DNA of 64,000 nt from Macrostomum lignano (Eukaryota): NCBI GenBank assembly GCA_002269645.1, contig NIVC01003476.1, positions 32,098 through 96,097 of the forward strand, read 5' to 3'. The stretch's first letter is position 1; every line of letters begins with the position of its first letter. The notes beneath the pieces were generated by a model, which did no database searches, was not told the origin of the DNA, and saw nothing but the letters and a program-made list of their open reading frames with translations. The translations under genes and the position numbers were made by a program. This document shows, in pieces, positions 7,924-47,822 of this stretch.

Positions 7924-7980
<57 letters not shown>

Positions 7981-8123
7981 TTCTGTATGTCTGTCTGTCT
8001 GTCTGTCTGTCTGTCTTTCTGTATGTCTGTCTGTCTGTCTGTCTGTCTTTCTGAATGTCTGTCTGTCTGTCTGTCTTTCTGTATGTATGTCTGTCTGTCT
8101 GTCTGTCTGTCTTTCTGTATGTA

Positions 8124-8166
<43 letters not shown>

Positions 8167-8251
8167 CTGTCTGTCTGTCTTTCTGTATGTCTGTCTGTCT
8201 GTCTGTCTGTCTTTCTGAATGTCTGTCTGTCTGTCTGTCTTTCTGTATGTA

Positions 8252-8294
<43 letters not shown>

Positions 8295-8569
8295 CTGTCT
8301 GTCTGTCTTTCTGTATGTCTGTCTGTCTGTCTGTCTGTCTTTCTGTATGTCTGTCTGTCTGTCTGTCTTTCTGAATGTCTGTCTGTCTGTCTGTCTGTCT
8401 TTCTGTATGTCTGTCTGTCTGTCTGTCTGTCTGTCTTTCTGTATGTCTGTCTATCTGTCTGTCTTTCTGAATGTCTGTCTGTCTGTCTGTCTGTCTTTCT
8501 GAATGTCTGTCTGTCTGTCTGTCTTTCTGTATGTATGTCTGTCTGTCTATCTGTCTGTCTTTCTGTCTA

Positions 8570-8608
<39 letters not shown>

Positions 8609-11600: not shown

Positions 11601-12601
11601 TTATCCTTAGAATTTTTTTATTTCTTAGAAATCGTTCTCCTTGGTTTTTCGTTTTCATCAAGCAGTGCAACAACGATCGTATACTCGCTCACACAGGGTG
11701 TACAGCACAATAAGCCTTGAATTAAAAACCATTCCAGGTGCCAGACATGTCATCATTCGCGTTAGTCAACTCTGTCTATGGTTCGCCAGAGCTCGGCTTT
11801 GCCAGCCGGCCGGGCTATCGATCGCCGCCAGCGCGAGCTTGCGTTGAATTGGCAACAGCAGCGTCTGAAGTGATGTCGGCTTCAATCCTAGTCTTAGAAG
11901 AGGATAAGGGATCCGATGCCTCAACAGTGGCCGCTATGCACGTGCGCAGCCGGAGTCACTGGGCCCCGGCCAACATTGGTCCGTATAGTCAGTGTATTGC
12001 ATTAGCTAATCATCGATTGTTATTAATATCCGGTCAGATTGCTATGGATCCGGCTACGCTGGAGATTCCACTAGGCTCCAGTGCTCAATGGCAAGCCGAT
12101 CTGTCCTTGCGTCATACTCTACGAGTAGCCCGTGCCAATGGTTACCAAGGACGCTTTGGTAGTGGTAGTAAAGACTGTAGTTTGTTTATCTGCTTTGGTT
12201 TAGATGCCGACTGTCTGTCTGCCGGTGTTGATAGCTTTCAACGATTGATCTGTCGGGAAAATCCCAGTCGTCTAGTGCTGCCTGCACTCTGCACCGGTCT
12301 GCCTAAAGGTGCCAAAGTTGAATGGCTCACCTTTTTAGTTAATGCCAACGATGATACATTAACGACTAGCATTGAATATGTTGACGAATTGGATGATGTC
12401 ACGACGCTAATTTCCCGTTGGCAACGAGGTGCTAAAAATAGTCTGGCAGTGTGTCTGGTCAATGAGACTGCACTAGCTGGGAGGAGCTACGATCTATCAT
12501 CAAACATTGCTGGCTGTCCTGTACTGCAGATCCGTTGCCATGGGTTTCTAAGCCAACGGTATGGCAACTCTGCTGCCGTTGTTGCTAGGCTGAATTTCTA
12601 A
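6100..12601 (+). CDS. DPH6: Diphthine--ammonia ligase with C-terminal RidA/YjgF domains; 5 exons, about 660 aa
   Basis: Exons 6100-6351, 7444-7641, 8833-9186, 10816-11130, 11738-12601, all GT-AG and phase 0. Motifs: SGGKDS PP-loop, [52 protein letters not shown]. RidA-like segments [41 protein letters not shown]. Confidence 0.95.
6530..7420. repeat. 28-bp minisatellite GAGTGCCATTTCCCTTAGGTCATTTAG(C/T), DPH6 intron 1
   Basis: Period 28 read directly; about 30 copies; ends next to the branch-point-like CTAAC at 7421. Confidence 0.95.
7740..8640. repeat. (TCTG)n microsatellite, DPH6 intron 2
   Basis: Interrupted tetranucleotide array; source of the spurious SVCL-repeat ORFs. Confidence 0.97.
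9230..10770. repeat. 52-bp minisatellite, DPH6 intron 3
   Basis: Unit GTATCTCAGTGTAGCTTGGCTGTGATTGGTGCAGATTCAATCTAATTTGGGA, about 29 copies. Variant units (GTGATT versus GTAATA) occur in blocks. Confidence 0.97.
11180..11420 (+). mobile_element. tRNA-headed SINE with CORE-like central domain, DPH6 intron 4
   Basis: A-box-like TAGCTTAGTG at about 11188 and B-box GGTTCGATTC at 11232-11241. Then CCCTTATCGAGCAAGACGCTTAACTCTGC..CAGTTGCTTCAAAATGGGGTAAT, resembling the MIR/CORE-SINE core as recalled from memory. Confidence 0.6.
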
Positions 12602-12820
12602 ATCAGCTAGCTTGAAGGTCGTTTGTTTGTTATTAGCATTTTTGACTTGAATTTTGAATGTTAATACTGTTATTACTATTTATTGATATTTTAAATATGG
12701 TGCAATATAAATTAATAAATACAATTGATTTAGTCTTCCTCTAATAGTGATTTTGTTTTTTTTTATTACAATATGATCTTTTCATTTATTTAGTTTGAAG
12801 CCAATTTTTTAGGGTGAGAA

Positions 12821-13144
12821 GGGTCCGTAGATCAGTAGTCTAGCGCGGCGTTCGGACGTGCCAGCGGCCCAGGCTCGATTCCATTAATTTGGGGCTGAAT
12901 TGGAATCTCGGCTTGGCTCTGCTCATGCAATTAACGACCCTGAGGCCCAACCCCCCAAGGCACAGTGAGGTGTACATGCATAGGGCCGCTGTACACTCCT
13001 GTGTGAGTGTGTGCCTGCGTACGTATCCGAGCGCTTGTGTGCCTGCTCAGGGGAGTCGGCAGAATGGGCAGTAATGGCTCTCGCCGGTTGTGTGACAATG
13101 TCGCTTAAAGTGCGCCAGGTGCACACAGGCCCCCCTGACTCTAA
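12821..13144 (+). mobile_element. tRNA-headed SINE-like element (family 2)
   Basis: A-box-like TAGATCAGTAG and B-box GGCTCGATTCC (12872-12882). Its 3' part recurs inverted at 48273-48426. Confidence 0.65.
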
Positions 13145-13489
13145 GAAAGTATAGCGTGGGAAGTAAGTTTTCGTTCTCTGAGTTTTAAAAAAAGATTTTT
13201 GAAAACAAAATAAGCTCGTTATTGTATCAGAATAAGTAGAGAACTTGGTTCGTATGTAAATATGATTAGTTTTTTGCAGCGGGTCACTTCACTCTTATTT
13301 CCGATCCACGGTTAACGTCAGCCAGGCGAGACCAGAACTAGTTAATTAATTGCTTATTGAATTTAATTATAGTAGACAGACTGAAGTTGACAAAATAACT
13401 GCTTGATCTGTACGGTTAGACAGCCTATAATGTGGATAAAACATGCAGACGGATCAGCAAACTTTGAACTAAATAACATCCAAACTTCA

Positions 13490-14340
13490 GCAAGAATTGC
13501 CCCCAAACCTCAGTAGGAATCGCCCCCAAACCTCAGTTAGAATCGCCGCCAAATATCAGTAAGAATCGCCCCAAACCTCAGTAAAAATCGCCCCCAAACC
13601 TCAGCAAGAATCGCCCCCAAACCTCAGCAAGAATCGCCCCAAACCTCAGCAAGAATCGCCCCCAAACCTCAGTAGGAATCGCCCCCAAACCTCAGTAAGA
13701 ATCGCCCCCAAACCTCAGTAAGAATCGCCCCAAACCTCAGCAAGAATCGCCCCAAACCTCAGCAAGAATCGCCCCAAACCTCAGCAAGAATCGCCCCAAA
13801 CCTCAGCAAGAATCGCCCCAAACCTCAGTAAGAATTGCCCCAAAAATCTCAGCAAGAATCGCCCCAAAAATCTCAGCAAGAATCGCCCTAAAAATCTCAG
13901 CAAGAATTGCCCCAAAAATCTCAGCAAGAATCGCCCCAAAAATCTCAGCAAGAATCGCCCTAAAATCTCAGCAAGAATCGCCCTAAAAATCTCAGCAAGA
14001 ATCGCCCTAAAATCTCAGCAAGAATCGCCCTAAAAATCTCAGCAAGAATCGCCCTAAAAAATCTCAGTAAGAATCGCCCTAAAAATCTCAGCAAAAATCG
14101 CCCTAAAAATCTCAGCAAGAATCGCCCTAAAAATCTCAGCAAGAATCGCCCTAAAAAATCTCAGCAAGAATCGCCCTAAAAATCTCAGCAAGAATCGCCC
14201 TAAAAACCTCAGCAAGAATCGCCCTAAAAATCTCAGCAAGAATTGCCCTAAAAACCTCAGCAAGAATCGCCCTAAAAATCTCAGCAAAAATCGCCCTAAA
14301 AATCTCAGCAAGAATCGCCCTAAAAATCTCAGCAAGAATC
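13490..14340. repeat. 21-23-bp minisatellite AAACCTCAGCAAGAATCGCCCC upstream of ACBD5
   Basis: About 38 copies with gradual unit drift along the array. Confidence 0.95.
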
Positions 14341-14544
14341 GCTCCCTAATATTAAGTAATTTTTATAGCATTTCACAACCAATCGCTCATTTCGGCATAG
14401 ATCTTGAAGCAATTTGAATGATTTTATTACACATTTCAGCTCATCTTCAAGCGATTGTCAATCAGTGAGTTCAGTGAATCAAAAAAGCTCCTATAACTGT
14501 ACTGTATTCGAAGTGCGAAATTAAGCTCTGCTGTAAATTAAGCC

Positions 14545-16248
14545 ATGTCAGCAGACACCAGTCCAGACTCCCAGCATCGTAATGCCTCATCTCGCAGTCC
14601 GCTAGCCCAGTTCGAGGCCGCTGTACAAGTTGTTGACAGTCTGCCGCGCGGCTCATCTAGCCAATCGGTTGCTATGCAAGGTTTCAAGCCGTCAACGGAT
14701 TTAATGCTTCGCTTCTATGCTCTATATAAGCAGGCTAGTAACGGTCCCTGCCAGCAGCCAAGGCCGGCATTCTGGGATCTGATTGGCAAAATGAAATGGG
14801 ATGCCTGGCGCGCGCTAGGCGACATGCCTCGCGAACGCGCCATGCTGGAATATTCTCGCCAGCTTCGCACTGTGATTGAAAGCCTGCCAAACTCGTCTCC
14901 AGCTGTTAGCGGACTAATTGACAAAGTTGCCAACTTCTATAGGCTTGTTGACGATGATGATGATGATCAGGAGTCTGAGGTTAAACTCGGCCTATTATTA
15001 GCCAATCGGATTCGATGTCGAAGCGGCGGTCATTTGGATGCAGAATCAGCCGCCGCCGCAGATTTAGATGTCAATTCCAATTTTCTAACGCAATCGTTGC
15101 CGCCTAAAATCACTAGTAGTAGTAGTAGTAATGATAATAGGAATGGCTTTCTAAGAAATAGTCAGCCTAATCCGCGCCGGAGACAAGCGTCGGAAACGTC
15201 AGTTTGGCCTGCGGCGGCGGTAGTGGCGTCAGCTGCTGTCGATCCAGAACATCCCGACCGAGGCGGCAGCAGCAGCAGCAGCGACAGCGACAATGACGAA
15301 TTCTGCGATTCCTACGACAATTTTGTACAGCCATTTGGCGATGATCAGCCGGGTGACGTCACCGGCGGTCAGCAGCCTTCGACTTCACCTTCATCTGCAT
15401 CTGCCTCAGGCGGCGGCGGTCACCAATCAGCTGGGCGTCGTCAAGGTCGTCAGCAGCAGCAGCAGCCTCACATCCAGCAGGCCTCCGAGCAGCTCCAGAC
15501 ACTGGCTAGACCCCATCGGGGCTGGCCGCCAGTGCTGGACTGTCAGGCGTGGGGTGGAAGGTCCGTTGGCCACGGACACGAAAGCTGGAATTCCGGCCCC
15601 TCTGCTGGGGTTGACCCTGGTGGACCTGGTGGCAGGCTCACCGACATGCCCTCTGCACACTCACGCGGCGACGCGGTGGTGCAAGGCCCCTGTCCTATGG
15701 TGAGCGGGGCATTGACGGCTGGCTGTGCCATGTTGCAGTCAGACCGTTCCCGTAGGCCCATTGACCAGGTGACCCAGCGGGGCCGGCATCAACAACAACA
15801 ACAACAACAGCAGCAGCAGCAGCAGCAGCAACTGCCTTCGGCTTCTAGCTTCGAGAATAGCAACGGGTTGTCATGGCAACCGCCGCCGCCGCCGCCGCCT
15901 GATCCTACTGGCCGCTCGGCAGCTGCTGCATCGAGCTTCGAACTTGAGCGCGAACTAGTCGGCCAACTGAGGCACATCCGAGCCGCTCTGGATCGTCTGT
16001 CCGGCGATCTTGGACAGATTCACACCCGTCTAGACAGGCTAGAACGAACTAGTCATAAAAGTGCATTGTCGGACAGCTCCGGCAGTTTCTACTGCTGGTT
16101 TCAGCGGTGGCTGTTCAGCGGCAGAGGTGTCGGCGGCTTGTCGGTACCGGCGCTGCTGCTGCTGCTGGCCTGGCCTGTGCTCGTCCAGCTGCTATGGCGG
16201 CTGCCCTGGAGACGGCTGCGACAGAGGAGGGGTCGGTTGGCCCTCTGA
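14545..16248 (+). CDS. ACBD5: Acyl-CoA-binding domain protein, ACBD5/ACBD4 type: N-terminal ACB domain, FFAT-like motif, coiled coil, C-terminal tail anchor; 567 aa
   Basis: ACB motif LRFYALYKQASNGPC..RPAFWDLIGKMKWDAW. Acidic SDSDNDEFCDSYDNF matches the FFAT-like motif of ACBD5. Heptad-like LRHIRAALDRLSGDLGQIHTRLDRLE. Hydrophobic VPALLLLLAWPVLVQLLW followed by a basic tail. Single open frame. Confidence 0.88.
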   Translation: MSADTSPDSQHRNASSRSPLAQFEAAVQVVDSLPRGSSSQSVAMQGFKPSTDLMLRFYALYKQASNGPCQQPRPAFWDLIGKMKWDAWRALGDMPRERAMLEYSRQLRTVIESLPNSSPAVSGLIDKVANFYRLVDDDDDDQESEVKLGLLLANRIRCRSGGHLDAESAAAADLDVNSNFLTQSLPPKITSSSSSNDNRNGFLRNSQPNPRRRQASETSVWPAAAVVASAAVDPEHPDRGGSSSSSDSDNDEFCDSYDNFVQPFGDDQPGDVTGGQQPSTSPSSASASGGGGHQSAGRRQGRQQQQQPHIQQASEQLQTLARPHRGWPPVLDCQAWGGRSVGHGHESWNSGPSAGVDPGGPGGRLTDMPSAHSRGDAVVQGPCPMVSGALTAGCAMLQSDRSRRPIDQVTQRGRHQQQQQQQQQQQQQQLPSASSFENSNGLSWQPPPPPPPDPTGRSAAAASSFELERELVGQLRHIRAALDRLSGDLGQIHTRLDRLERTSHKSALSDSSGSFYCWFQRWLFSGRGVGGLSVPALLLLLAWPVLVQLLWRLPWRRLRQRRGRLAL

Positions 16249-16306
16249 TCCCTCAGGTGGCTGGCTAAACGGTCGGTGCGAATATTGGTGAGAATGTGAT
16301 GGCCAT

Positions 16307-16750
16307 GATTCTAAGAAATCACTCAAGATTCTGAGATGGATAGGATTCTAAGAAATCACTCAAGATTCTGAGATGGATAGGATTCTAAGAAATCACTTAA
16401 GATTCTGAGATGGATAGGATTCTAAGAAATCACTTAAGATTCTGTAATGGCTAGGATTCTAAGAAATCACCCAATCAAGATTCTTTGAGGGCCAGGATTC
16501 TAAGAAATCACCCAATCAAGATTCTTTGAGGGCCAGGATTCTAAGAAATCACTCAAGATTCTGAGATGGATAGGATTCTAAGAAATCACTCAAGATTCTG
16601 AGATGGTTAGGATTCTAAGAAATCACTCAAGATTCTGTGATGGATAGGATTCTAAAAAATCATCCAATCAAGATTCTGGGATGGATAGGATTCTAAGAAA
16701 TCACTCAAGATTCTGAGATGGATAGGATTCTAAGAAATCACTCAATCAAT
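16307..16750. repeat. 37-bp minisatellite GGATTCTAAGAAATCACTCAAGATTCTGAGATGGATA
   Basis: About 12 copies just 3' of the ACBD5 stop codon. Confidence 0.93.
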
Positions 16751-17145
16751 ATTCTTCGAAGGCCAGAAGCTCACTCAAATATTACTAACATTTTTTAAAA
16801 TATTCGAAATTAGCCAGTGTTTTCGCCTCGCTTTTTCGGACTTGGATTGGACACAAATATTGAGGCTTACACAGACAAGCTTTTGTCGCTCCTACAGTCT
16901 CCCTCACGGTGTGATGTTGCAATGATTCTTAATGTCTTATTTTAGCCTGACAAAAATACTCTTGTGCTGTCTTTCGTTAATTTGCCTGTAATTTTCCCCG
17001 TGTTTTGTACTGCAAATAGCTTTGAGACTATCCTAAAAAATGATTTTGTGATTAGCCGATTAAGTCTCTATTCTTCTGTCTCTTGTTTTCTATTGATTTC
17101 CGAATCAATAGGTTGTAATTTTTACAACCTTTGAACTTTTTATCT

Positions 17146-17742
17146 CTGCTACCCTCCCTCAGAGTCCTTCATTTGGTCACTGCTACCCTCCCTCAGAGTA
17201 ATTCATTTGGTCACTGCTACCCTCCCTCAGAGTAATTCATTTGGTCACTGCTACCCTCCCTCAGAGTAATTCATTTGGTCACTGCTACCCTCCCTCAGAG
17301 TAATTCATTTGGTCACTGCTACCCTCCCTCAGAGTAATTCATTTGGTCACTGCTACCCTCCCTCAGAGTAATTCATTTGGTCACTGCTACCCTCCCTCAG
17401 AGTAATTCATTTGGTCACTGCTACCCTCCCTCAGAGTAATTCATTTGGTCACTGCTACCCTCCCTCAGAGTAATTCATTTGGTCACTGCTACCCTCCCTC
17501 AGAGTAATTCATTTGGTCACTGCTACCCTCCCTCAGAGTAATTCATTTGGTCACTGCTACCCTCCCTCAGAGTAATTCATTTGGTCACTGCTACCCTCCC
17601 TCAGAGTAATTCATTTGGTCACTGCTACCCTCCCTCAGAGTAATTCATTTGGTCACTGCTACCCTCCCTCAGAGTAATTCATTTGGTCACTGCTACCCTC
17701 CCTCAGAGTCCTTCATTTGGTAACTGCTACCCTCCCTCAGAG
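17146..17742. repeat. 34-bp highly homogeneous minisatellite CTGCTACCCTCCCTCAGAGTAATTCATTTGGTCA
   Basis: About 17 copies with essentially identical internal units. Confidence 0.97.
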
Positions 17743-18329
17743 AGTCATTTATTGGTTCTACACTAGAGTTAAACCATCCAATTTTATGCACTGTCATATT
17801 TTAATTTATGATTTCAGTAGATTAACTATAATTTATGCATAGGTTTAGGTCCCTATAGTATGCGCAGTCAACTTACCCCGAGAGCTTGTATATTGTAGGT
17901 CCTGTAAGGCAAAATCATTTTTCTCAATCATTCAAATCGTATCCATTGGTCTTTTGCGCATAATTTTCAGTATTTCTTCATGCATATTTTTGTAATTCGT
18001 ATTAATTCTAATTTAGTACGTGTAATAACAGTATAAAAACGTGGCTAATATGTGATTGATATAATTGCGAGATCTATTGTCATCTAATAGGCTTACACCC
18101 CAACCCTGTAATTTCAATATCTATTACTCAACACTTGTGTATATTCGTAGTTTTACGCATCTATGCGTTTATAAGCTAGTATAGTGCGTTAACTTTTTTC
18201 TGCTATCATATTCAGAATTATATGTGATTTTATCTCTGTTGATTGTTGTTGGTTAACTATATGTATTGTCTTTGCGTTGTTTTATACATTTATTAGAATT
18301 CCTGTCAGGTAGGTTAAGTAGTAACGCTC

Positions 18330-19230
18330 AGAATTTAGTGTCAGATGGATCATTAATAAGTGTCAGGATTTAGTGTCAGATGGATCATTAATAAGTGTCA
18401 GGATTTAGTGTCAGATGGATCATTAATAAGTGTCAGGATTCAGTGTCAGATGGATCATTAATAAGTGTCAGGATTTAGTGTCAGATGGATCATTAATAAG
18501 TGTCAGGATTTAGTGTCAGATGGATCATTAATAAGTGTCAGGATTCAGTGTCAGATGGATCATTAATAAGTGTCAGGATTTAGTGTCAGATGGATCATTA
18601 ATAAGTGTCAGGATTTAGTGTCAGATGGATCATTAATAAGTGTCAGGATTCAGTGTCAGATGGATCATTAATAAGTGTCAGGATTTAGTGTCAGATGGAT
18701 CATTAATAAGTGTCAGGATTTACTGTCAGATGGATCATTAATAAGTGTCAGGATTTAGTGTCAGATGGATCATTAATAAGTGTCAGGATTTAGTGTCAGA
18801 TGGATCATTAATAAGTGTCAGGATTCAGTGTCAGATGGATCATTAATAAGTGTCAGGATTTAGTGTCAGATGGATCATTAATAAGTGTCAGGATTTACTG
18901 TCAGATGGATCATTAATATGTGTCAGGATTTAGTGTCAGATGGATCATTAATAAGTGTCAAGATTTAGTGTCAGATGGATCATTAATAAGTGTCAGGATT
19001 TAGTGTCAAATGGGTCATTAATAAGTGTCCGGATTTAGTGTCAGATGGATCATTAATAAGTTTCAGGATTTAGTGTCAGATAAGGTCATTAGTATTCTAA
19101 GTGTCAGGATTTACTGTCAGATGTATCATTAAAAAGTGTCAAGATTTGTTGTCAGGTAGGTCATTAATGTCAGGTTTTGTTGTCAGGTAGGTCATTAGTA
19201 ACTGTCAGGATTTAGTGTCAGCTGCCATTA
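18330..19230. repeat. 35-bp minisatellite GTGTCAGATGGATCATTAATAAGTGTCAGGATTTA
   Basis: About 25 copies, ending about 80 bp upstream of the beta-catenin-like ATG. Confidence 0.96.
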
Positions 19231-19309
19231 GTGTCAGAATCCGTTAGATTTAGGTATATTTATTTGCCACAATAAATTGCATGCCGTCTACTCCGAAGCT
19301 GTCAGCAAA

Positions 19310-22300
19310 ATGTCAACATTTCGGTCTTCTTATCGCGAAGCAACAACGCCTACAGGTGCATCAGCTGCAGCTGGTCCGGTAAACTTCAGCGCCAGCTTAG
19401 ATCGTCAATCGGTTTCCATGGATACGCTGAATAGACAGATGCACAGAGGCAGAGCTGTGAGGGTCAGGCAGGCTCTGTTTCCCGAGACTGTTGGTGCAGA
19501 GGCTGAGCAGATGGCTGGCTTGGAGACACTCACAAGAGGTCGGCGGAGACTGCCAACCAGTGTGCAACAGTTGGCTGAACCGGCGCAGGTGAGAGAGTGA
19601 TAATAAAACTTGATGTGGTTGCACCGGTTGTAATTATAAAACTACTTGACATTTGTTTCTCCAATGTATTTTCGGAATTGTTTTCAAAATCTATTTTTAG
19701 AATCGCCTTTTGTAATCGTCTCCAATCTATTTTTAGGATGGCTCTTCAGTCTATTTTCTTAGAATCGCCTTCTAATCTATTTTTAGAATCGCCTCCCACA
19801 TTCTATTTTTAGATTGGTCCTCTAATATATTATAAAAAATCGCCTTCAAATCTTTTTTTAGAATCGCCTCTCCCAATCTATTTTTAGAATCGCCTACCCA
19901 ATCTATTTTTAGAATCGCCCTTTAATCTATTTTTAGAATCGCCTCTCCCATTCTATTTTTAGAATCGCCTACCCAATCTATTTTTAAAATCGCCTCTCCC
20001 ATTCTATTTTTAGAATCGCCTACCCAATCTATTTTTAGAATCGCCTCCTCCAATCTATTTTTAGAATCGCCTCCTTCAATCTATTTTTAGAATCGCCCTA
20101 CAATATATTTTTAAAATCGCCCTCTTTTCTTTTTTTAAAATCGCCCTTTAGTCTATTTTTATAATCGTCTTCAATAATTGGTTTTTAATCTTAGATTACA
20201 TGAGAACATTTCTTTTTTGGAGTTGCCCTGTTTAAAGCCTAACCAAAATAACCCTTCTTTAACCCCTTGCTCACGAACCGCCCTCTGCACAATGTACCCT
20301 TCTCCCTAATCCCCGCAGATACTTCGCACAGCCGTAGTCAATCTGATCAATTACCAAGAGGACGCAGACGTGGCACTGCACGCGGCAGCGGAACTGGCTC
20401 GCCTGCTAGGCAGCTCAGATCCGGTCACCTGTCAGCGGGCCGCCTCCCTGACTCTGCAATTGTCTAAGAAGCAGGCCTGCCGATTGGCATTCGCTGTTCA
20501 AGTCGATCTCATTGAGGCCCTACTAATAGTAGTGCAAACTGCACAGTCGGTTGAGGCGCTTCGATTCGCTGTTGGCGCCCTGTGCCACATCTGTCAGGCT
20601 GAGCAGGGCTGCGCCACTGTTTATCAGTGCGGCAGAGTTCGCGCCGTGCCTGAACTGCTGCGCTTGTTGGGTGAGGTCACAAACGGCGGATGGGGAGAGG
20701 CTGGGAGCTCAGAATAACTACCTAACAGCAGGTGATGAAGGAGAGAGGCTGGGAGTAGCTACTCAGCAGCCAGATGATGAAGGAGAGAGGCTGATCGAGA
20801 GTAGCTACTCAACAGCAGGTGATGGAGGAGAGAGGCTGATCGAGAGTAGCTACTCAACAGCAGGTGATGGAGAAGAGAGGCTGATCGAGAGTAGCTACTC
20901 AACAGCAGGTGATGGAGGAGAGAGGCTGATCGAGAGTAGCTACTCAACAGCAGGTTATGGAGGAGAGAGGCTGATCGAGAGTAGCTACTCAACAGCAGGT
21001 GATGGAGGAGAGAGGCTGATCGAGAGTAGCTACTCAACAGCAGGTGATGGAGGAGAGAGGCTGATCGAGAGTAGCTACTCAACAGCAGGTTATGGAGGAG
21101 AGAGGCTGATCGAGAGTAGCTACTCAACAGCAGGTTATGGAGGAGAGAGGCTGATCGAGAGTAGCTACTCAACAGCAGGTGATGGAGGAGAGAGGCTGAT
21201 CGAGAGTAGCTACTCAACAGCAGGTGATGGAGGAGAGAGGCTGATCGAGAGTAGCTACTCAGCAGCATATGGTGCGATAGGTGTAATGTAGTCAGTGTTT
21301 TGTATTCATATAACTATATCGTATGTACAATGCCAATGCCGCACAGGTAGCACGGATGTCCGCACCCGGAACTACGCTCTCACCTGTCTGCACCACCTGC
21401 TGGTTCACCTGGAGGAGGTGCGTAACGAAGCCAGGATGGCTTCCGGTGCTCAGGTGCTCTCTGAGCTGCTTCTGAGCATTGTGTCCACCAGCTGGCAGCA
21501 AGCCTCTGTGTCCTCGCCTCCGCCACCGATGTCGCCGCCACTGTCTGCAGCTTCCACAGGTTCCGGTTCGGAAGCTCAGCAGCAGCAGCAGAAACTGATG
21601 GCCGTGTGCATTGACTCTCTGCAGTTGCTGGCTTTTGGTATGCATTTGTGTTGTGATGAGGTATATTAATACATCAAGTACATGCAGGAGGTCTGTGGGC
21701 ACCCTTGCGGAACCCTTGTGTTTACAAGAATTTTATTATAAAATATTACGTAAGAATAGTTGGATGACGTCACGTCCTTTTCCCGACAGCCAATCAGGAG
21801 AGCAAACTGGTTCTGCTAAGCTGCGGCGCTGTGGACCAGCTGGTTAATTTATTGCTAACAAGTCGTTACGAGAAGCTGCTATTCTCGACTAGTCGCTTAT
21901 TAAAAGTGCTATCGGTTGAGCCAAGCTGCAAGTCAGCCATATTAGCCGCAGGCGGTATGACTGCTCTGGGACGGCACTTGAAATCGACTGGCTCGGAGAG
22001 ACTGGTTATGAATGTGCTCTGGACTATTAGAAATCTTAGCGATCAGGTAAAAGTGTTTCACCTGGAACCCTACCCCTTTCGCCTGGAATCTTACCTGTTT
22101 CACCTATAATCCCACCTGTTTCCCTGGAATCCCACCTGTTTCCCCTAGAATTCTACGTTTCCTCTTGAATCCTACATGTTTCCCCTGGAATCTTACCTGT
22201 TTCACATGGAATCCTACCTGTTTCCCCTGGAATCCTACCTGTTTCCCCTGGAATCCTACCTGTTTCCCCTGGAATCCTACCTGTTTCCCCTGGAATCCTA

Positions 22301-25300
22301 CCTGTTTCCCCTGGAATCCTACCTGTTTCAATTGGAATCTTAGCTGTTTTACTTAAAATCCCACCTGTTTCCCCTGGAATCTTACCTGTTTCACCTGGAA
22401 TCTTAGCTGTTTTACTTAAAATCCTTCCGGTTTCCCCTGGAATATTTCCTGTTTTCGCTTGAATCCTTCCTGTTTCCCTGGAATATTTCCTGTTTTCGCT
22501 TGAATCTTTCCTGTTTCACATTGAATCCTACCTGTTTTGCATAGAATCCTACCTGTTTTACATGGAGTCCTACCTGTTTTACATGGAATCCTACCTGTTT
22601 CCCCTGGAGTCCTACCTTTTCCCCTGGAATCCTACCTTAAGGATCCCACTTGTCTTAATTTTACCAACACTAAAACTACAGGCCTTCACACTGAATCAGC
22701 CGCTCGATCAGCTTCTAGTAGACCTAATCGGCCTGTTAGCTTCGCCGGACATCGACTGCGTCACCTGCGCGGCGGGCATATTGTGCAACTTGACCTGCCG
22801 AAATCGACGAAATAAATTTGTTGTCACCTCGTCTGGCGGCGCCGGCGCTCTATCGCAAACTCTCCTAGCTGCCCAGGATCGCGAAGAGATTGCCGAACCG
22901 TTAATGTGCGCCCTGCGTCATATTACTCACGATCATGAACAGGTCAGTAGTGCATGTGTAAGCATCTTATTGTCAATTTTTATCGAAAACTCAAAAAACA
23001 TCAGTAAACAGTCTACAACCACTTTGAGAAATATAGTTAAAGAGTCGCATTCTCGGTCCTCTCAATCTGATTGGACGACACGCTGCCAGCCAATAGGCGT
23101 TCGCGAAGCTTCTGAATCCAGCCAACCTCGTAAATACCATATTATTTAGGCTTGCGCAGCTGCCGATGCTGTTCTATCGCACGGGCTGGCCTGCACTCTT
23201 GGCGAGCTGCTACATCGGGCGGCTGTCGTTGCCGATGCCACCACCGTGGGAGTCGGCGTCAGCGTCGCCAACGACGAGCCAGGAGGTCCCGCTGCCAGTC
23301 GGCCGTTGGTGAAGGTCAGTGCTGGCTAGTTGACATGGCACCTTTTCTTTGGATCCTTTCTTCAGCTTTTGTGCTGCTTCATCCTTGAATCTGCTTCTCC
23401 GCTCCATCAGTGCTTGAGAATCTGCTTCTCCGCTCCATCAGTGCTTGAGAATCTGCTTCTCCGCTCCATCAGTGCTTGAGAATCTGCCTCTCCGCTCCAT
23501 CAGTGCTTGAGAATCTGCTTCTCCGCTCCATCAGTGCTTGAGAATCTGCCTCTCCGCTCCATCAGTGCTTGAGAATCTGCCTGTCCACTCCATCAGTGCT
23601 TGAGAATCTGCCTCTCCGCTCCATCAGTGCTTGAGAATCTGCCTCTCCGCTCCATCAGTGCTTGAGAATCTGCCTCTCCGCTCCATCAGTGCTTGATAAT
23701 CTGCCTCTCCGCTCCATCAGTGCTTGAGAATCTGCCTCTCCGCTCCATCAGTGCTTGAAAATCTGCCTCTCCGCTCCATCAGTGCTTGAGAATCTGCCTC
23801 TCCGCTCCATCAGTTCTTGAGAATCTGCCTCTCCGCTCCATCAGTGCTTGAAAATCTGCCTCTCCGCTCCATCAGTGCTTAAGAATCTGCCTCTCCGCTC
23901 CATCAGTGCTTGAGAATCTGCCTCTCCGCTCCATCAGTGCTTGAGAATCTGCCTCTCCGCTCCATCAGTGCTTGAGAATCTGCCTCTCCGCTCCATCAGT
24001 GCTTGAGAATCTGCCTCTCCGCTCCATCAGTGCTTGAGAATCTGCCTCTCCGCTTCATCAGTGCTTAAGAATCTGCCCACCCTAAAAACCCCTCCCCGAT
24101 CTCCACAGGCCGCTCTGGGCCTCTGCCGGAACCTGTCGCTCCACGCTGCCGGCCGCGCCGCCCTCCACGCCGAGTCCGTCCCTGCCGCAGCCTCCGCCAT
24201 CGCGGCCGCCACTTTGGCTCGCGGCATCGACGCCCTCCTCGACGATGCCGGCTCGATAGCGTCTGCTGGCGGCGCCGACGACGGCGTCAGAGCCGAGGAG
24301 GTCCTTGAGGCCGCCCTGGCCTGCCTGCACTCTCTTGCCGGCGAGGGCGACGGCGAAACCGACCCGATCGAAGCTCGCCGCCAACGTGACGCCGTAGCAG
24401 CCGCGGTGCGCAGCCGGCCGGGCCTGCCCGACTCTGTCGCCGAATTGGCCGCCGGCGGCGTTGTCGGCAGCAGCTGCGTCGGTCCGGCTGGCGACCTGCT
24501 GGAACGTCTGGCTACGGCGAATGCCGCCACTGGTTCAACTTCGGCTACGCTGCAGCGCAGGCCAGCTGTGGAGCTGACGGATGAGCAGCAGCAGCAACGC
24601 CATCTCAGCGACAGATCTTCCGTTCTTGACGTTCCAGACGTTTCCGTCCGGCCCTACCGATACGGTGAGGAGAACTCCATGCCCCCACTCCAGCCACACA
24701 CACTGAGAATCGCCCCCACTCCAGCCACACACACTGACAATCGCCCCCACTCCAGCCACACACACTAAGAATCGCCCCCTCTCCAGCCACACACACTGAG
24801 AATCGCCCCCTCTCCAGCCACACACACTGAGAATCGCCCCCACTCCAGCCACACACACTGAGAATCCACACACACACACTAAGAATGTGGGGGGATCCCC
24901 CCACACACACTGAGAATCCCCCCACACACACTGAGAATCCCCCCACACACACTGAGAATCGCCCCCACACACACTGAGAATCGCCCCCACTCCAGCCACA
25001 CACACTAAGAATCGCCCCCTCTCCAGCCACACACACTAAGAATCGCCCCCTCTCCAGCCACACACACTGAGAATCGCCCCCACTCCAGCCACACACACTG
25101 AGAATCCCCCACACACACTGAGAATCCCCCCACACACACTGAGAATCCCCCCACACACACTGAGAATCGCCCCCACTCCAGCCACACACACTGAGAATCC
25201 CCCCACACACACTGAGAATCCCCCCACACACACTGAGAATCGCCCCCACTCCAGCCACACACACTGAGAATCCCCCCACACACACTGAGAATCCCCCCAC

Positions 25301-26131
25301 ACACACTGAGAATCCCCCCACACACACTGAGAATCGCCCCACACACACTGAGAATCCCCCCACACACACTGAGAATCCCCCCACACACACTGAGAATCCC
25401 CCCACACACACTGAGAATCCCCCACACACACTGAGAATCCCCCCACACACACTGAGAATCCCCCCACACGCACTGAGAATCCCCCCACACACACACTGAG
25501 AACCCCCACACACACACTGAGAACCCCCCCCACACACACTGAGAATCCCCCACACACACTGAGAATCGCCCCCACTCCAGCCACACACACTGAGAATCCC
25601 CCCACTTCAGCCACACACACTGAGAATCGCCCCCCACTCCAGCCACACACTGAGAATCACCCCTCTTGCAACCCTTGAAAATCAGAATCTGCAACACATA
25701 AAAGCAGCATAACAAAGAAATGTAATTCAAAATTCTCTCATTTGTTTTACTAGGCTCCGGTGCCGTTGTGTAGTCTCAAAGTGGCCTATTGCTTCGCCTA
25801 TTTAATATTATATAATTAGATTGTTTTATTATCATTGATAATTTTCACATAATGATTGGTTAGTTAATGCTTGCACAAAGGATGCACACAAAAGTAATAA
25901 AAACAACTAATTGGGCCACACGATGCAATTCCGTACTAATATAGAGACATATTTACTCTCGCCGTTTACCCAAAAAATTTATAACGCAATTCCGTAGATC
26001 CCGAAAGAAGCGGGGCCACTCTACCTGTTAACTATGCTGCTCAGTTGCCGCCCAGCTACCACACCTATCAGCAGGAGCAGCAACTGCAGCCAGAGCCGCC
26101 GCAGCACTGGTATAGCACTGCCAAGATATGA
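19310..26131 (+). CDS. CTNNB1: Divergent beta-catenin/armadillo family protein; 8 exons, about 764 aa (gene symbol is family-level only)
   Basis: Exons 19310-19588, 20319-20670, 21347-21637, 21790-22046, 22682-22942, 23150-23314, 24109-24664, 25998-26131, all GT-AG with matching phases (2295 nt including stop). Motifs: [116 protein letters not shown]-terminal WYSTAKI. Confidence 0.9.
19690..20170. repeat. About 25-26-bp minisatellite CTATTTTTAGAATCGCCTCTCCCAAT, beta-catenin intron 1
   Basis: Degenerate tandem array. Confidence 0.85.
20720..21270. repeat. 45-bp minisatellite, beta-catenin intron 2
   Basis: GAGAGGCTGATCGAGAGTAGCTACTCAACAGCAGGTGATGGAGGA, about 12 copies. Confidence 0.95.
22070..22640. 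repeat. 21-bp minisatellite GGAATCCTACCTGTTTCCCCT, beta-catenin intron 4
   Basis: Tandem array between the 22047 donor and the 22681 acceptor. Confidence 0.92.
23385..24075. repeat. 31-bp minisatellite GAGAATCTGCCTCTCCGCTCCATCAGTGCTT, beta-catenin intron 6
   Basis: About 22 near-identical copies. Confidence 0.96.
24680..25660. repeat. Mixed 21/31-bp minisatellite GAGAATC(G)CCCCC(ACTCCAGC)CACACACACT, beta-catenin intron 7
   Basis: Two interleaved unit lengths. Confidence 0.95.
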
Positions 26132-26579
26132 TATGAATGATTGCTGGCTTACACGTTGACCGTGTGTTTTTTTTATTGTTGACTGTGTACAAGCTCCACA
26201 TAAACGATTATTCTAAGCCTCTCGTTCATGCATAAATTTTCCAGTTTATGTATATGTTGATACTTGAGATTATGGTTTTTTAAACTGTGATATTATATAG
26301 CCTGTTATCTGTTCTTAAATACTTTTACTAAATGCTATATTAAATCTTGTGATTTAAGAATGAAAGTTTGAAAATTATCATTAGCTAAATCCGATTTTAG
26401 CGGAATTCATATTTCATTGTATTTTCTTTTATTGCTAATAATAATGTTTCCAAGCCTGTATCTTCTAATTCTTGCCTTTAAAATCGTGTTTTTCTAAACT
26501 ATTATTGTAATTGCCGCATTGATTTCTATCCCAAATTTACACGGACCAAAAAAACTGCCAGGCCATTTATAACGCCCTC

Positions 26580-27230
26580 TCAACCCCCAAATGTACACTC
26601 GCCACTGCCTGGCCAGTTATAACCTCCTCTCTACCCCCAATGTACACTCGCCACTGCCTGGCCAGTTATTACCCCATCTCTGCCCCCAAATGTACACTCG
26701 CCACTGCCTGGCCAGTTATTACCCCATCTCTGCCCCCCAATGTACACTCGCCACTGCCAGGCCAGTTATAACCTCCTCTCTACCCCCAATGTACACTCGC
26801 CATTGCCGGGCCAGTTATTACCCCATCTCTGCCCCCAATGTACACTCGCCACTGCCGGGCCAGTTATTACCCTATCTCTGCCCCCCAATGTACACTCGCC
26901 ACTGCCAGGCCAGTTATTACCCCATCTCTGCCCCCAATGTACACTCGCCACTGCCGGGCCAGTTATTACCCTATCTCTGCCCCCCAATGTACACTCGCCA
27001 CTGCCAGGCCAGTTATTACCCCATCTCTGCCCCCCAATGTACACTCGCCACTGCCAGGCCAGTTATAACCTCCTCTCTACCCCCAATGTACACTCGCCAT
27101 TGCCGGGCCAGTTATTACCCCATCTCTGCCCCCAATGTACACTCGCCATTGCCGGGCCAGTTATTACCCCATCTCTGCCCCCCCAATGTACACTCGTCAC
27201 TGCCAGGCCAGTTAAAACCCCATCCCTACC
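26580..27230. repeat. About 49-bp minisatellite CCCCAATGTACACTCGCCACTGCCGGGCCAGTTATTACCCCATCTCTGC
   Basis: About 13 copies, intergenic. Confidence 0.95.
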
Positions 27231-28042
27231 CCCAACACACAATAAACCGCATTATGAGCGCTGGCGCATTGTACTTTTAATGATATTTGCTATGCTGAGT
27301 GTTTATTTTTTGTTATATAATCTATTGACTCTGGCTTGTTTAATAAATCGTGCACATTCCATTCTGCGGTGTTGTGAACTTTTTTGAGAATTAAACATTC
27401 CCGTCCAGTTATGGAAACAAGGTTTTGATATTACGACGTATTATTGAAATATTTGTTTAAAGTTCGTCTAAAATAATTTATATGTTGGCCGTTATATTTT
27501 GGCTGGTACCAAGTGTAACTAATGCGTGTGTTATCAATTTATTATTTTTATCATTCTCTAATTTTCAAATCAGTTTTTTACCGCCTAGCTAGCAATTGCC
27601 ACACGGAAAAAAACATTCGCCTACTCATGCTACTGTTTTTCAGTAGGTCGGTAGTGCGTTTTGCTATCTATTTTTGTCTCTGGTAAATTTTATTAATTCT
27701 CTTGCACAGCTTGAGTAGTTTAGTTCTATAAATACGCGTGTAACTAAATTTAATAATAACACTATTTATCATTAATCATAAACTAATATAGTTGTTTTAC
27801 TGGTATACTAAAGCTACTATTAGTAGTACAGCTGCTAAATTAATTAATTAAATTAACAGGTGCAAAAGTTGTTGGTTCCAATCTAAAAGAATTACGTCTT
27901 AAAATTTTGTTACTTCTTTGATTGCCTGTGCAAGCACGGGTGCTTATATCACGTGGATATGAAAACTATTAAAAGTGGATAAAATATTCACGAACGGGCA
28001 TCTGCTAAACAGTGCTTATGTATCTGATGTCTTGTCTTATAC

Positions 28043-29977: not shown

Positions 29978-32755
29978 ATGAAGCTGAGAACAATCGGGCC
30001 GATTGCTACATGCATATTACTTCTAACTGGTACACACGGCAGTAGCGGAAATTCTAACACTACTAAGTGTAGTAGTGTTGGCTCTGCAGTCGCAAACTGC
30101 TATTGCAGCAGAGGGTCGAGAGTCGTTGAAATTTCTCCACGCGACGCTATAGTCGAAATTTCAACTCGCTACAATGACTCCAACCAGCCCTTGCCTAGTG
30201 GCACGAACTGCAAGTTCGTCATCCCGGGCCGGGCCCATCTGCGGTATTTGATCACCGTTCTCGAGGCCCACGTGGCAGACGACGCCACCTACCTTGAAGT
30301 GACTGACGGCAACAGGACTCTGCTGCACGACGTCAATCTGCACTTCAGCCGGCGGATGGCTATCAGCAGCGGCGGCTCCATCTCGGTGAACTTCTGGATG
30401 GGCTGGAACAGGCGACCCGGGTCAGGAGGCGGAGGCTACCGGATTCGAATGGAGCGGTTCCGGAGCCACCACTGCCCGCCGAACTGGACTAAGGCTGCGT
30501 GGAGTGCAGAGCAGAAGTTCTGCATCAGCCCTTCATCAGCCGATTTCCTTGGCCTGGTCGCCAACGCTACCGCTGTCGCTGATTACGTCACGGCGCAGGA
30601 CATCTGCAACCGGATGAGAGCCAACCTGCTGATGCCGCCTAAGGTGACAGCTTCTTGGTTTCATTGCATTGCTTGTAAAAAAAATTATTTTTCTAGAAGA
30701 GGAACATTTGATCTGCTTTTAAAGGAACTCTTTCTGTACCCTGAAAAATATTTTGGCTGTCGCCCCTGGTGCTGGCGCCCCTGGTGCTGGCGCCCCTGGT
30801 GCTGGCGCCCCTGGTGCTGGCGCCCCTGGTGCTGGCGCCCCTGGTGCTGGCGCCCCTGGTACTGGCGCCCCTGGTGCTGGCGCCCCTGGTGCTGGCGCCC
30901 CTGGTGCTGGCGCCCCTGGTGCTGGCGCCCCTGGTGCTGGCGCCCCTGGTGCTGGCGCCCCTGGTGCTGGCGCCCCTGGTGCTGGCGCCCCTGGTGCTGG
31001 CGCCCCTGGTGCTGGCGCCCCTGGTGCTGGCGCCCCTGGTGCTGGCGCCCCTGGTGCTGGCGCCCCTGGTGCTGGCGCCCCTGGTGCTGGCGCCCCTGGT
31101 GCTGGCGCCCCTGGTGCTAAATTCCCTGGTGCTAAAGATCCTGGTGCTAAAGTCCCTGGTATTAAAGCCCCTGTTGCTAAAGCCCCTGGTGCTAAAGATC
31201 CTGGTATTAAAGCCCCTGTTGCTAAAGCCCCTGGTGCTAAATTCCCTGGTGCTAAAGCCCCTGGTGCTAAAGATCCTGGTATTAAAGCCCCTGTTGCTAA
31301 AGCCCCTGGTGCTAAAGATCCTGGTGCTAAAGCCCCTGGTGCTAAAGCCCCTGGTGCTAAAGCCCCTGGTGCTAAAGCCCTCTCAGCGGTTTATGAACCG
31401 ACCAGCCATTAATTCTATTATCCACATTTGCAATTTTCAGTCCCAGCTCAAGTCAAGGCTCGGGGATCTGCAGAAACTGCTCAACTACAAAGACCTGGTG
31501 TGGATCGGCCTGATGAGCAACAGTTCAGCTGCTCCCGGCAAAAATCTGTACTGGCTTGACAACTCACAAGAGCAACCGCAACAGTAAGAAGCCACTTATG
31601 AATACAAATTAGCTTACAATGATTTTCACCTTCACAATGTCTAATATTTACAACCTTACAATTTACTGTATAAGTTTTCTTTTGCTGACTCTTCACAATC
31701 CCCAACCTTCACAATCCCCAACCTTCACAATCTCCAACCTTCACAATCCCCAACCTTCACAATCTCCAACCTTCACAATTCCCAACATTCATAATCCCAA
31801 ACATTCACAACCCCCAACCTTCACAATCCCCAAACTTCACAATCTCCAACCTTCACAATCTCCAACCTTCACAATTCCCAACCTTCATAATCCCCAACCT
31901 TCACAATACCAAAGATTCACAATTCCCAACATTCATAAACCCCATCCTTCACAATCCCCAAGTTTCACAATCCCTAACCTTCACAATCCACAAGCTTCAC
32001 AATCTTCAACCTTCGCAATCCCCAACCTTCACAATCTCCAACCTTTACAATTCCCAACCTTCATAATCCCCAACCTTCACAATACCAAAGCTTCACAGTC
32101 TTCAACCTTCACAATCCACAAGCTTCACAATCCCGAAGCTTCACAATTCCCAACATTCACAATCCCCAACCTTCCTAATCCCCAATCACCCAGAGACCCA
32201 GACTTCCTGACCTGCCGTTCGGGCTACACCTGGTCAGCTGGGTCTGCCTGTCAGTCGGGTGAGCTGTTCGGCCTGCTCCGGCCAACCCCATCAGCCTACC
32301 TACTTCTGGATCGGCCAAACGAGCAGCACTACTTTGCCTGCTCAGCGCCCATAGGCGGCACTGATGACTTCTACCCAGTGTGGCTTGAGCAGTCGCTCTT
32401 TAAAGTGCAAGGTGACCCAGCTTCCAAGTCATCAGGAAGTGAATTTAAACAATTTTTCAGTGATAATTTCAGCATCATTGTGTCCGCACTGATGCTCGCT
32501 TTGGTTGTCATGGTATCATTTGGCCTTGCCATGATTTATCGTCCTAGGATTCACAGCGGCATTCCGACTGGTGAACCAGTTCGACCTGTACAGCATCCGC
32601 CAGAAGAGGTACCCTTAATTGATAATGAAGAAGTTGAAAATCTGGCAGATGAAGAACTCTCAATTAATAACGAAAGTGCAGGAAATGTTATTGACGCCAA
32701 TCAAATTGTTGATATTCATAATACTGTTAGTGATCATACATGTGCTATACAATAA
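29978..32755 (+). CDS. Type I membrane protein: signal peptide, CUB-like domain, C-type-lectin-like domain, TM helix, acidic cytoplasmic tail; 3 exons, about 456 aa
   Basis: Exons 29978-30643, 31441-31583, 32194-32755 (phases 0 and 2 match). Signal-like IATCILLLTG. CUB-like NCKFVI..YLEVTDG..SISVNF..GYRI. CTLD-like HCPPNW..FCI..AQDICNRMRANL..WIGL..LYWLD..HYFAC. TM IIVSALMLALVVMVSFGLAMIY. Confidence 0.8.
30763..31380. repeat. 15-bp minisatellite CCCCTGGTGCT(GGCG/AAAG), intron 1 of the CUB-CTL gene
   Basis: Sharp switch from GGCG to AAAG-type units at about 31117. Confidence 0.96.
31690..32190. repeat. 16-bp minisatellite CACAATCCCCAACCTT, intron 2 of the CUB-CTL gene
   Basis: Degenerate array running up to the 32193 acceptor. 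Confidence 0.9.
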
Positions 32756-41988: not shown

Positions 41989-42135
41989 TCACTTCTTTGT
42001 TGCAAATGGGGCACAGACATCTTTCACCTTTGAATGCTGCCCCGGCATTGCCTCCTCCTCTTCCCCCTCCTCCTCCTCCTCCTCCTCCTCCTCTTCCTCC
42101 TCCTCCTCCTCCTCCTCTTCCCCTCCTCCTCCTCC

Positions 42136-42197
<62 letters not shown>

Positions 42198-45850: not shown

Positions 45851-46069
45851 ACTCTGTAATCTCTATATATATGAGTTCAACACCCTTCTCATCACCGTTG
45901 CAATCCATTACAAAAAATACAAATAAATTAATCGATGTGCCATTAATGAACCTTTTGAGGTCTCAAATCGTGTTTTCAGCTTCTAAAAGTAGCAAATTGA
46001 ATTGTCCCTTGAACAAGATCTTGCAGATATAGATTTCTGTGAATCAGATGCCATTTACCCCCAAACATT

Positions 46070-47700: not shown

Positions 47701-47822
47701 GATGAGAAAATCGGAGGAGATAGCGCCAGGAGTGAGGCCTGTCAGAAGCCCCAGCCAGAGTTTCTGAAAACTGCTTTGAATTGCTCAACAGCAAGTATTC
47801 ACGCATAACCCATTCTGCAAAT

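Follow-up and report, generated by a model that had tools for sequence, protein, structure and literature searches.

Flatworms are the textbook case in which the adhesion and signalling roles of beta-catenin have been split among paralogs. Several subfunctionalised beta-catenins are also present in Caenorhabditis elegans, where HMP-2 is the adhesion-dedicated beta-catenin of the cadherin-catenin complex. In planarians, beta-catenin-2 was described at cell junctions only, with the alpha-catenin motif and the cadherin platform kept and the Wnt elements not kept, and Schmidtea beta-catenin-2 was reportedly used as the adhesion-only control, not engaging beta-TrCP or TCF, in co-immunoprecipitations (PMC5643146). 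According to the same paper, planarian beta-catenin-3/4 are inhibitory: they have retained the GSK3 sites and the groove residues, bind both beta-TrCP and TCF, and no longer possess the last two repeats, helix C or the transactivation domain (PMC5643146). A further member of the family was analysed here in a stretch of 64,000 nucleotides (64 kb) of contig NIVC01003476.1 of Macrostomum lignano, which is referred to in its full length as the window, and the beta-catenin gene at 19310-26131 on its + strand as the window gene. From its sequence, the window gene on balance probably arose by a Macrostomum-specific duplication within the adhesion-type beta-catenins of flatworms (the beta-catenin-2 class). 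In this early-branching flatworm, a model for regeneration, the split of functions would thus have advanced by a further step, a renewed duplication of the adhesion-type gene after which one copy shed its C-terminal third and kept its alpha-catenin surface and its groove. The window gene adds a lineage-specific case to a division of beta-catenin functions that was known before, and it raises no new question for the field. The study of Kibet et al. 2025, reportedly called a survey of Macrostomum beta-catenin by a 2026 preprint, probably includes it and may already name it.

The window gene lies in an intron-rich eukaryotic region and was modelled as eight exons joined at canonical splice sites (Table 1), with all seven introns of the GT-AG type and in consistent phases, and with a product of 764 amino acids (aa). 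The top database match was BOX15_Mlig009386g1 of M. lignano (P0001, 767 aa, 98% identity), the GenBank model of which has the same exon structure and the same ATG as the independently built model of the window gene. The contig bearing it, NIVC01001186.1, is collinear with the window and has the same two genes upstream, one DPH6-like and one with an ACBP domain; the exons of the two loci correspond one-to-one at 97-99% identity and the introns at 89-98% (best local match). Because of this collinearity and exon identity, the window locus is a second genomic copy, that is, a homeologue, the other haplotype or another assembly. Between the two copies, 24 substitutions are synonymous and 7 non-synonymous, and there are two in-frame indels; the ratio of non-synonymous to synonymous rates (dN/dS) is 0.10 (binomial p = 4e-9 versus neutrality). 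Within aa 501-764 the counts are 6 synonymous versus 2 non-synonymous differences (p = 0.006). The reading frame of exon 7 is kept between the copies, with in-frame indels only. With this dN/dS and with intact frames, the window gene is therefore intact and under purifying selection and is not decaying. In full-length database searches no homologue was found intermediate between BOX15_Mlig009386g1 and the sister paralog Mlig026881 (48% identity), nor was an orthologue in other Macrostomum species found in the databases searched. The public M. lignano model P0142 (UniRef A0A1I8FQN6, 'DUF4116 domain-containing protein'), with its '70%' identity, was rejected as an orthologue, as it is a wrong model consisting of a frame-shifted fragment of the window gene itself.

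Membership of the window protein in the beta-catenin family was determined by several searches. It matched full-length zebrafish beta-catenin 2z6g with E = 1.9e-95 (phmmer), the Pfam Arm family matched it best at aa 353-392, and the top 50 Foldseek matches of its AlphaFold2 model were all beta-catenin or plakoglobin, with target-normalised template modelling scores of 0.71-0.81. The predicted local distance difference test (pLDDT) score of this model was mostly above 90 for approximately aa 110-510, with the exception of the insert in repeat 4. Residues were numbered on a human beta-catenin sequence of 781 aa, the correctness of which was controlled by this length and at 29 landmark residues. 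Arm repeats 1-10 were recognisable in the window protein and repeats 11-12 and helix C were not, so that the full series of twelve repeats with helix C is not present.

For the assignment to a class, a neighbour-joining tree of 56 beta-catenins was built with 200 bootstraps, planarian beta-catenin-3/4 (KY196224, KY196225) not being among them. The window gene, BOX15_Mlig009386g1 and Mlig026881 formed a clade in 200/200 bootstraps, which joined Schmidtea mediterranea beta-catenin-2 (ABW79874.1), the Hymenolepis and Cichlidogyrus proteins and P0177 with 76% bootstrap support. The signatures RNLSDQAF/Y.L, G(I/C)LCNLTC, ALRH(I/V)TH and KKQA(C/S)RL are common to the beta-catenin-2 class and the window protein. 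The window gene is accordingly placed in the flatworm beta-catenin-2 adhesion class with moderate support. Compared with the features by which the classes are told apart, the window protein has the alpha-catenin-binding motif and lacks the GSK3 sites, as beta-catenin-2 does; it lacks the GSK3 sites and degron of beta-catenin-3/4, and its last two arm repeats, helix C and transactivation domain are lost as in those proteins; and of canonical beta-catenin it has neither the DSGxxS degron, nor the Axin pocket (F253/F293), nor the C-terminal transactivation region (arms 11-12, helix C and acidic tail).

The other beta-catenins of M. lignano were located by exhaustive search and cluster look-ups, and the complement found consists of one degron-bearing beta-catenin-1 in three copies and two degron-less beta-catenin-2-type genes. 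The second of the latter, Mlig026881 (P0002, 746 aa, with its locus on M. lignano contig NIVC01000337.1), is the sister paralog of the window gene. Like the window gene, it has no degron, a Ser/Thr-rich stub near the position of T41/S45 and a conserved alpha-catenin segment; unlike the window protein, it keeps F253, F293, D162, D164, Y654, arms 11-12 and helix C, and it is without both inserts. Three intron positions of the two genes coincide within a codon or two (positions being approximate) and the others differ, which points to an old duplication at the DNA level. Mlig026881 was observed to be a nearly complete beta-catenin with the alpha-catenin helix, yet with only a TTTTTSRTST stub and no DSGxxS, seemingly a signalling-competent but degron-less beta-catenin.

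The M. lignano beta-catenin-1 is Mlig023492 g1-g3 (P0148, 835 aa; P0274; P0275), with three near-identical copies bearing a canonical SDSGIHSVMSGTSAPS degron and a poly-Gln-rich tail and lacking the alpha-catenin helix (21% identity, no Y142). It is from the same genome and family as the window gene, with arm repeats 3-9 conserved, and differs from the window protein in having the degron, in keeping F253/F293 and D162/D164 and in the absence of the alpha-catenin helix. In the tree it was placed beside Camerata 'bCatenin1' and the Opisthorchis/Clonorchis catenin beta in a weak clade (33% bootstrap). By these features, Mlig023492 is read as the signalling beta-catenin-1. Three M. lignano beta-catenin homologs have been silenced together by RNA interference (PMC12435804), and the three copies of Mlig023492 are probably these 'three homologs'. 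A public model of this gene, P0157 (UniRef A0A1I8IV10, 'Armadillo repeat-containing protein 8'), was found to be wrong, with beta-catenin-1 fused to a translated minisatellite (GASTRGASTR...).

The adhesion-type reading is supported by the alpha-catenin-binding segment, which is the best-conserved part of the window protein outside the repeats. Two chains labelled as beta-catenin in the search output, both from structures of complexes with alpha-catenin, matched it: 4ons_B with E = 2.7e-11 and 1dow_B with E = 1.9e-7. The segment of human residues 118-149 is 68% identical in the window protein versus 21% in M. lignano beta-catenin-1.

The second surface is the groove of the arm repeats. The preliminary description, made from the letters of the window, had listed as retained the equivalents of K312, K345, W383/R386/N387, K435, R469/H470 and K508, all of which were recovered in the landmark alignment to human beta-catenin (as K313, K346, W385/R388/N389, K438, R472/H473 and K535, respectively) together with N426 and R515, so that the charged-button lysines K312 and K435 and nine more contact residues are conserved. 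It had also called the groove intact, and this was right for the Lys, Arg, His and polar contacts; overlooked were F253N (N219), F293L (L294) and W338F (F339), by which the hydrophobic pocket for Axin and the TCF helix is altered, with H260 and K292 kept. At the BCL9 site, the reported change of LLNDED to LLGSSD was found, with D162 replaced by S125 and D164 kept, and the equivalents of L156, L159, L178 and K181 are conserved. Two low-complexity inserts had been described in repeats 3 and 9. Both exist, as 39 Ser/Pro/Gln-rich and 28 Ala/Val/Gly-rich residues, and the second is in the loop of repeat 9 as stated; the first falls in repeat 4 rather than in repeat 3, between human L286 and N287, which is the loop from helix 2 to helix 3. 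The Ser/Pro/Gln insert was predicted as partly ordered by AlphaFold2, with pLDDT below 50 at 267-277 and with no helix assigned by DSSP at 266-282.

At the N-terminus, the claims of a protein about 40 residues shorter than vertebrate beta-catenin, devoid of DSGxxS, with EATTPTGAS recalling GATTTAPS, agreed with the alignment: Y142 corresponds to Y105, which makes the N-terminus 37 residues shorter than the human one, D32, S33 and G34 have no equivalents, and aa 10-18 align with GATTTAPS. For the detection of an upstream degron exon, the pattern D[ST]G..[ST] was searched in all + frames of 11000-19310 and in intron 1 and was not found. When the N-terminal parts of human beta-catenin, Mlig026881 and M. 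lignano beta-catenin-1 served as tblastn queries over the 64 kb, exon 1 was the only match (Mlig026881 residues 56-95, E = 2e-6). An in-frame TAG stands upstream of the start at 19229-19231, and the 8.3-kb upstream stretch (11000-19310) holds two other genes on the + strand. The idea that exons for the degron or for arms 11-12 had been missed was rejected on the absence of the motif upstream and in intron 1 and of any other tblastn match in the 64 kb. The degron was absent in 6/6 beta-catenin-2-class proteins compared, including Mlig026881, Schmidtea beta-catenin-2 and parasite beta-catenin-2, and was present in the beta-catenin-1 of M. lignano, Camerata and Opisthorchis. The missing degron, which headed the preliminary description, is not peculiar to this gene, as its absence is shared by the sister paralog and the flatworm beta-catenin-2 class; since all six class members compared are without it, the absence is an inherited class trait.

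The C-terminal third is where the window gene departs from its sister. The observation that arms 11-12 are unrecognisable was reproduced, BLASTP against the sister paralog being not significant past approximately aa 615, and so was the erosion of the co-activator surface in this region: identity to human in arm 11, arm 12 and helix C was 12%, 17% and 7% for the window protein and 39%, 60% and 48% for the sister paralog, respectively, and a profile of arms 11-12 and helix C did not match the window protein (hhalign probability 0.04%). No hidden exons for these parts were found in the 64 kb by tblastn with C-terminal probes. Arm 10 can still be aligned with that of the sister paralog (85 aa, 48% identity), and the block-mean pLDDT of aa 531-615 was mostly 85-95, with dips to 66 (571-580) and 47 (581-590) and values below 50 at 583-590. 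Beyond it, the AlphaFold2 model has two moderately confident helices within 621-649; past 653 its confidence is low, with pLDDT below 50 for 653-690 and for the tail encoded by exon 8. Residues 501-700 consist of 24% Ala and 10% Gly, and exon 7 has 70% G+C. The protein ends with WYSTAKI in place of WFDTDL, as had been noted; its end TAKI has a hydrophobic last residue and Ala at position -2 and is without a class I PDZ-binding motif, and Schmidtea beta-catenin-2 and the sister end with VEL and MDV, respectively.

Relative rates of the window gene and its sister were compared with human as the outgroup. For human 78-519, 46 versus 38 unique changes were counted (p = 0.38), and for human 520-691, 48 in the window gene versus 9 in the sister (p = 2e-7); the same pattern was obtained with three other outgroups. 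Constraint on the alpha-catenin segment and arms 1-9 thus appears to have been equal in the two genes since the duplication, and the feature that sets the window gene apart is a burst of divergence from arm 10 to helix C, approximately 5 times faster than in the sister.

On these results, the window protein is proposed as a linker from cadherin to alpha-catenin, because the alpha-catenin segment is strongly conserved and the groove residues of arms 5-9 are intact. It would bridge classical cadherin tails to alpha-catenin at cell junctions, with the extended part of the tails held by the charged and polar groove residues of arms 5-9. With its degron missing and its Axin pocket altered, the protein is unlikely to be controlled by the destruction complex and may thus escape turnover by Axin, GSK3 and beta-TrCP; the eroded C-terminus argues against co-activation, and it may be unable to serve as a transcriptional co-activator. 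Canonical Wnt signalling in M. lignano would then run via the separate degron-bearing beta-catenin-1, Mlig023492. After the duplication, the front two thirds would have remained under sister-like constraint and the C-terminal third would have diverged fast and then become fixed, which points to a catenin of cell junctions that either contacts cadherin tails in a changed manner or serves particular tissues. Of the two functions proposed in the preliminary description, an adhesion-only catenin fits better, and a stable TCF competitor, although possible, is disfavoured.

Several points weigh against the adhesion-type reading. The class assignment rests on a neighbour-joining tree with 76% support that was built without planarian beta-catenin-3/4. 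Mlig026881, which has kept arms 11-12, Y654, helix C, F253/F293 and D162/D164, looks for that reason the better candidate for the main junctional catenin, and the window copy may do something else. E-cadherin tails also contact arms 11-12 around Y654, a surface that is gone in the window protein. The PDZ-type C-terminus reported for beta-catenin-2 is not present in canonical form (TAKI), and the conserved TCF hot-spot residues make TCF binding compatible with the sequence.

Among the described proteins, one close likeness is Schmidtea beta-catenin-2 (ABW79874.1), in which, as in the window protein, the degron is absent, the alpha-catenin motif and the cadherin-contact residues of the groove are present and the F253 pocket is changed. 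It differs in having recognisable arms 11-12 (19% and 36% identity to human, respectively), Y654 and helix C (29%), and the window protein differs in its two low-complexity inserts and its C-terminal ending. Planarian beta-catenin-3/-4, compared by their published description, resemble the window protein in the retained groove and in that their last two arm repeats, helix C and transactivation domain are lost, and are unlike it in that the window protein has no degron and has an altered Axin/TCF pocket. The C. elegans HMP-2 structures PDB 4r10/4r0z matched the window protein with E of approximately 5e-38; HMP-2 arose, unlike the window gene, in an independent nematode duplication.

It is unlikely that the window protein is instead a constitutively stable, transcriptionally inert competitor for TCF, which would be nuclear, would occupy TCF by its conserved groove, would damp beta-catenin-1 and would be a convergent analogue of planarian beta-catenin-3/4. 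The TCF/LEF hot-spot residues K312, N426, K435, R469, H470 and K508 are kept, there is no degron, and the erosion of arms 11-12, helix C and the tail is like that described for beta-catenin-3/4 (PMC5643146). This possibility is weakened because the same groove residues occur in Schmidtea beta-catenin-2, treated in that paper as adhesion-only, and because the F253/F293 pocket is changed. Moreover, beta-catenin-3/4 are described there as keeping the GSK3 sites and binding beta-TrCP, whereas the window protein has neither the sites nor a DSG motif, and a role at junctions is favoured by the strong conservation of the alpha-catenin segment. A further point against it is that movement through the nuclear pore reportedly depends on arms 10-12.

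Just as doubtful is a neofunctionalised scaffold, the front of which would bind alpha-catenin and a groove ligand and the rebuilt Ala/Gly-rich third of which would bind a new lineage-specific partner or change the regulation. In its favour, the C-terminal third, with five times the divergence rate of the sister's, is now conserved between the two copies (the 6 versus 2 differences given above), and helices are predicted with moderate confidence at 621-649. The substitution counts are small, however, the prediction for most of the C-terminal third is of low confidence or disorder, the databases searched yielded no orthologue in other species, and no candidate partner is known. More doubtful still is a reading in which one copy of the duplicated adhesion-type gene, having independently lost arms 11-12, helix C and the tail, would have become a degradation-proof decoy for groove ligands (TCF, APC or cadherin tails). 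It would parallel beta-catenin-3/4 by convergence, though without a degron, and selection would now act on its rebuilt C-terminal third for a new role.

An artefact of the gene model, with a 5' degron exon or 3' exons for arms 11-12 missed, is quite improbable. Minisatellite-filled introns of M. lignano do confuse gene predictors, and the public models P0142 and P0157 are visibly wrong; the seven GT-AG introns with consistent phases, the structurally identical GenBank model of the other copy, the absence of a degron-like open reading frame (ORF) in the 8.3 kb upstream and of other tblastn matches of the N- and C-termini in the 64 kb, and the exon 7 frame conserved with in-frame indels all stand against it. 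There is hardly any likelihood of a redundant duplicate decaying to a pseudogene after a recent genome duplication, for which the lost C-terminal repeats, the low-complexity inserts and the existence of a better-conserved sister gene might speak, and which was rejected by the frames intact in both copies, the dN/dS of 0.10 (p = 4e-9) and the relative-rate test, with arms 1-9 evolving no faster than the sister's.

The positions of the parts of the window gene and of the other features of the window are listed in Table 1.

Table 1. Positions of the window gene, its parts and other features within the 64-kb window.
Feature	Position	Strand	Content
Exon 1	19310-19588	+	aa 1-93; start codon, short N-terminus, start of alpha-catenin-binding segment
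EATTPTGAS (aa 10-18)	19337-19363	+	within exon 1
Alpha-catenin-binding segment (aa 39-112)	19424-20375, across intron 1	+	Y105 (Y142 equivalent) at 20352-20354
Exon 2	20319-20670	+	aa 94-211; end of alpha-catenin helix, arm repeats 1-2
LLGSSD (aa 122-127), BCL9-site equivalent	20403-20420	+	in exon 2
Exon 3	21347-21637	+	aa 211-308; arm repeats 3-4
N219 (F253 equivalent); L294 (F293 equivalent)	21370-21372; 21595-21597	+	exon 3
Ser/Pro/Gln insert, 39 aa (aa 253-291)	21472-21588	+	exon 3
Exon 4	21790-22046	+	aa 308-393; arm repeats 5-6; K313, K346, W385/R388/N389
Exon 5	22682-22942	+	aa 394-480; arm repeats 7-8; N429, K438, R472/H473
Exon 6	23150-23314	+	aa 481-535; arm repeat 9; K535 (K508 equivalent)
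Ala/Val/Gly insert, 28 aa (aa 503-530)	23216-23299	+	exon 6
Exon 7 (whole)	24109-24664	+	aa 536-720
Exon 7, first part (aa 536-615)	24109-24348	+	arm repeat 10, recognisable
Exon 7, remainder (aa 616-720)	24349-24664	+	Ala/Gly-rich, in place of arm repeats 11-12 and helix C
Exon 8	25998-26131	+	aa 721-764 and stop; Pro/Gln/Tyr-rich tail; WYSTAKI at 26108-26128
Minisatellite, intron 1	19714-20172		~26-bp unit
Minisatellite, intron 2	20724-21267		45-bp unit
Minisatellite, intron 4	22054-22637		21-bp unit
Minisatellite, intron 6	23387-24077		31-bp unit
Minisatellite, intron 7	24681-25663		21/31-bp units
Minisatellites, 5' flank of window gene			37-, 34- and 35-bp units
Minisatellite, 3' flank of window gene			99-bp unit
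L-PSP endoribonuclease-domain gene	11738-12601	+	counterpart on NIVC01001186.1 also with diphthamide-synthase domains, DPH6-like
ACBP-domain gene	14545-16248	+	one long ORF; upstream neighbour; matches NIVC01001186.1
380-aa ORF	29978-31120	+	Pfam Keratin_B2_2 match over 15-bp tandem repeat GCTGGCGCCCCTGGT x24, 30756-31118
Long terminal repeat (LTR)-retrotransposon pol fragment	37183-38196	-	reverse transcriptase and RNase H domains
LTR-retrotransposon pol fragment	62781-63788	+	integrase zinc-binding domain and integrase core; near window end
Long ORFs	41989-44235 and 46044-47806	-	748 aa; 462-532 aa; no Pfam match in the two scanned

Every larger intron and both flanks of the window gene (window 16295-27235) hold a minisatellite of their own, unrelated to the others, and approximately 20 such arrays are spread over the 64-kb window. 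Their lengths vary between the two genomic copies, with intron 6, for instance, measuring 794 versus 193 bp. The upstream genes that agree with those of NIVC01001186.1 lie within 7500-16250 on the + strand.

A further beta-catenin clade was encountered in environmental/Logan assemblies (P0147, P0165, P0171, P0183 and P0190; loci L003 and L004). Its members have a DSGIQ-type degron and long Asn/Gln-rich N-termini, and their C-terminus ends soon after arms 11-12. They resemble the description of flatworm beta-catenin-3/4 and were suspected to be these proteins; the beta-catenin-3/4 primers of PMC5643146 had no match in loci L003 and L004, and the peptides encoded by the primers matched 0/286 fetched proteins. 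All matches of a search with P0183 were metagenome or Logan proteins. At locus L003, an 848-aa beta-catenin gene is present as one uninterrupted ORF.

Downstream of the window gene, the Keratin_B2_2 match of the 380-aa ORF is probably a low-complexity artefact; at the corresponding place, NIVC01001186.1 has a 460-aa gene without Pfam matches. The long ORFs on the - strand at 41989-44235 and 46044-47806 lie in regions of extreme GC and AT skew and overlap tandem arrays with units of 21 bp (43335-43966) and 16 bp (46084-47698), respectively, and they are probably repeat-derived open frames and not genes.

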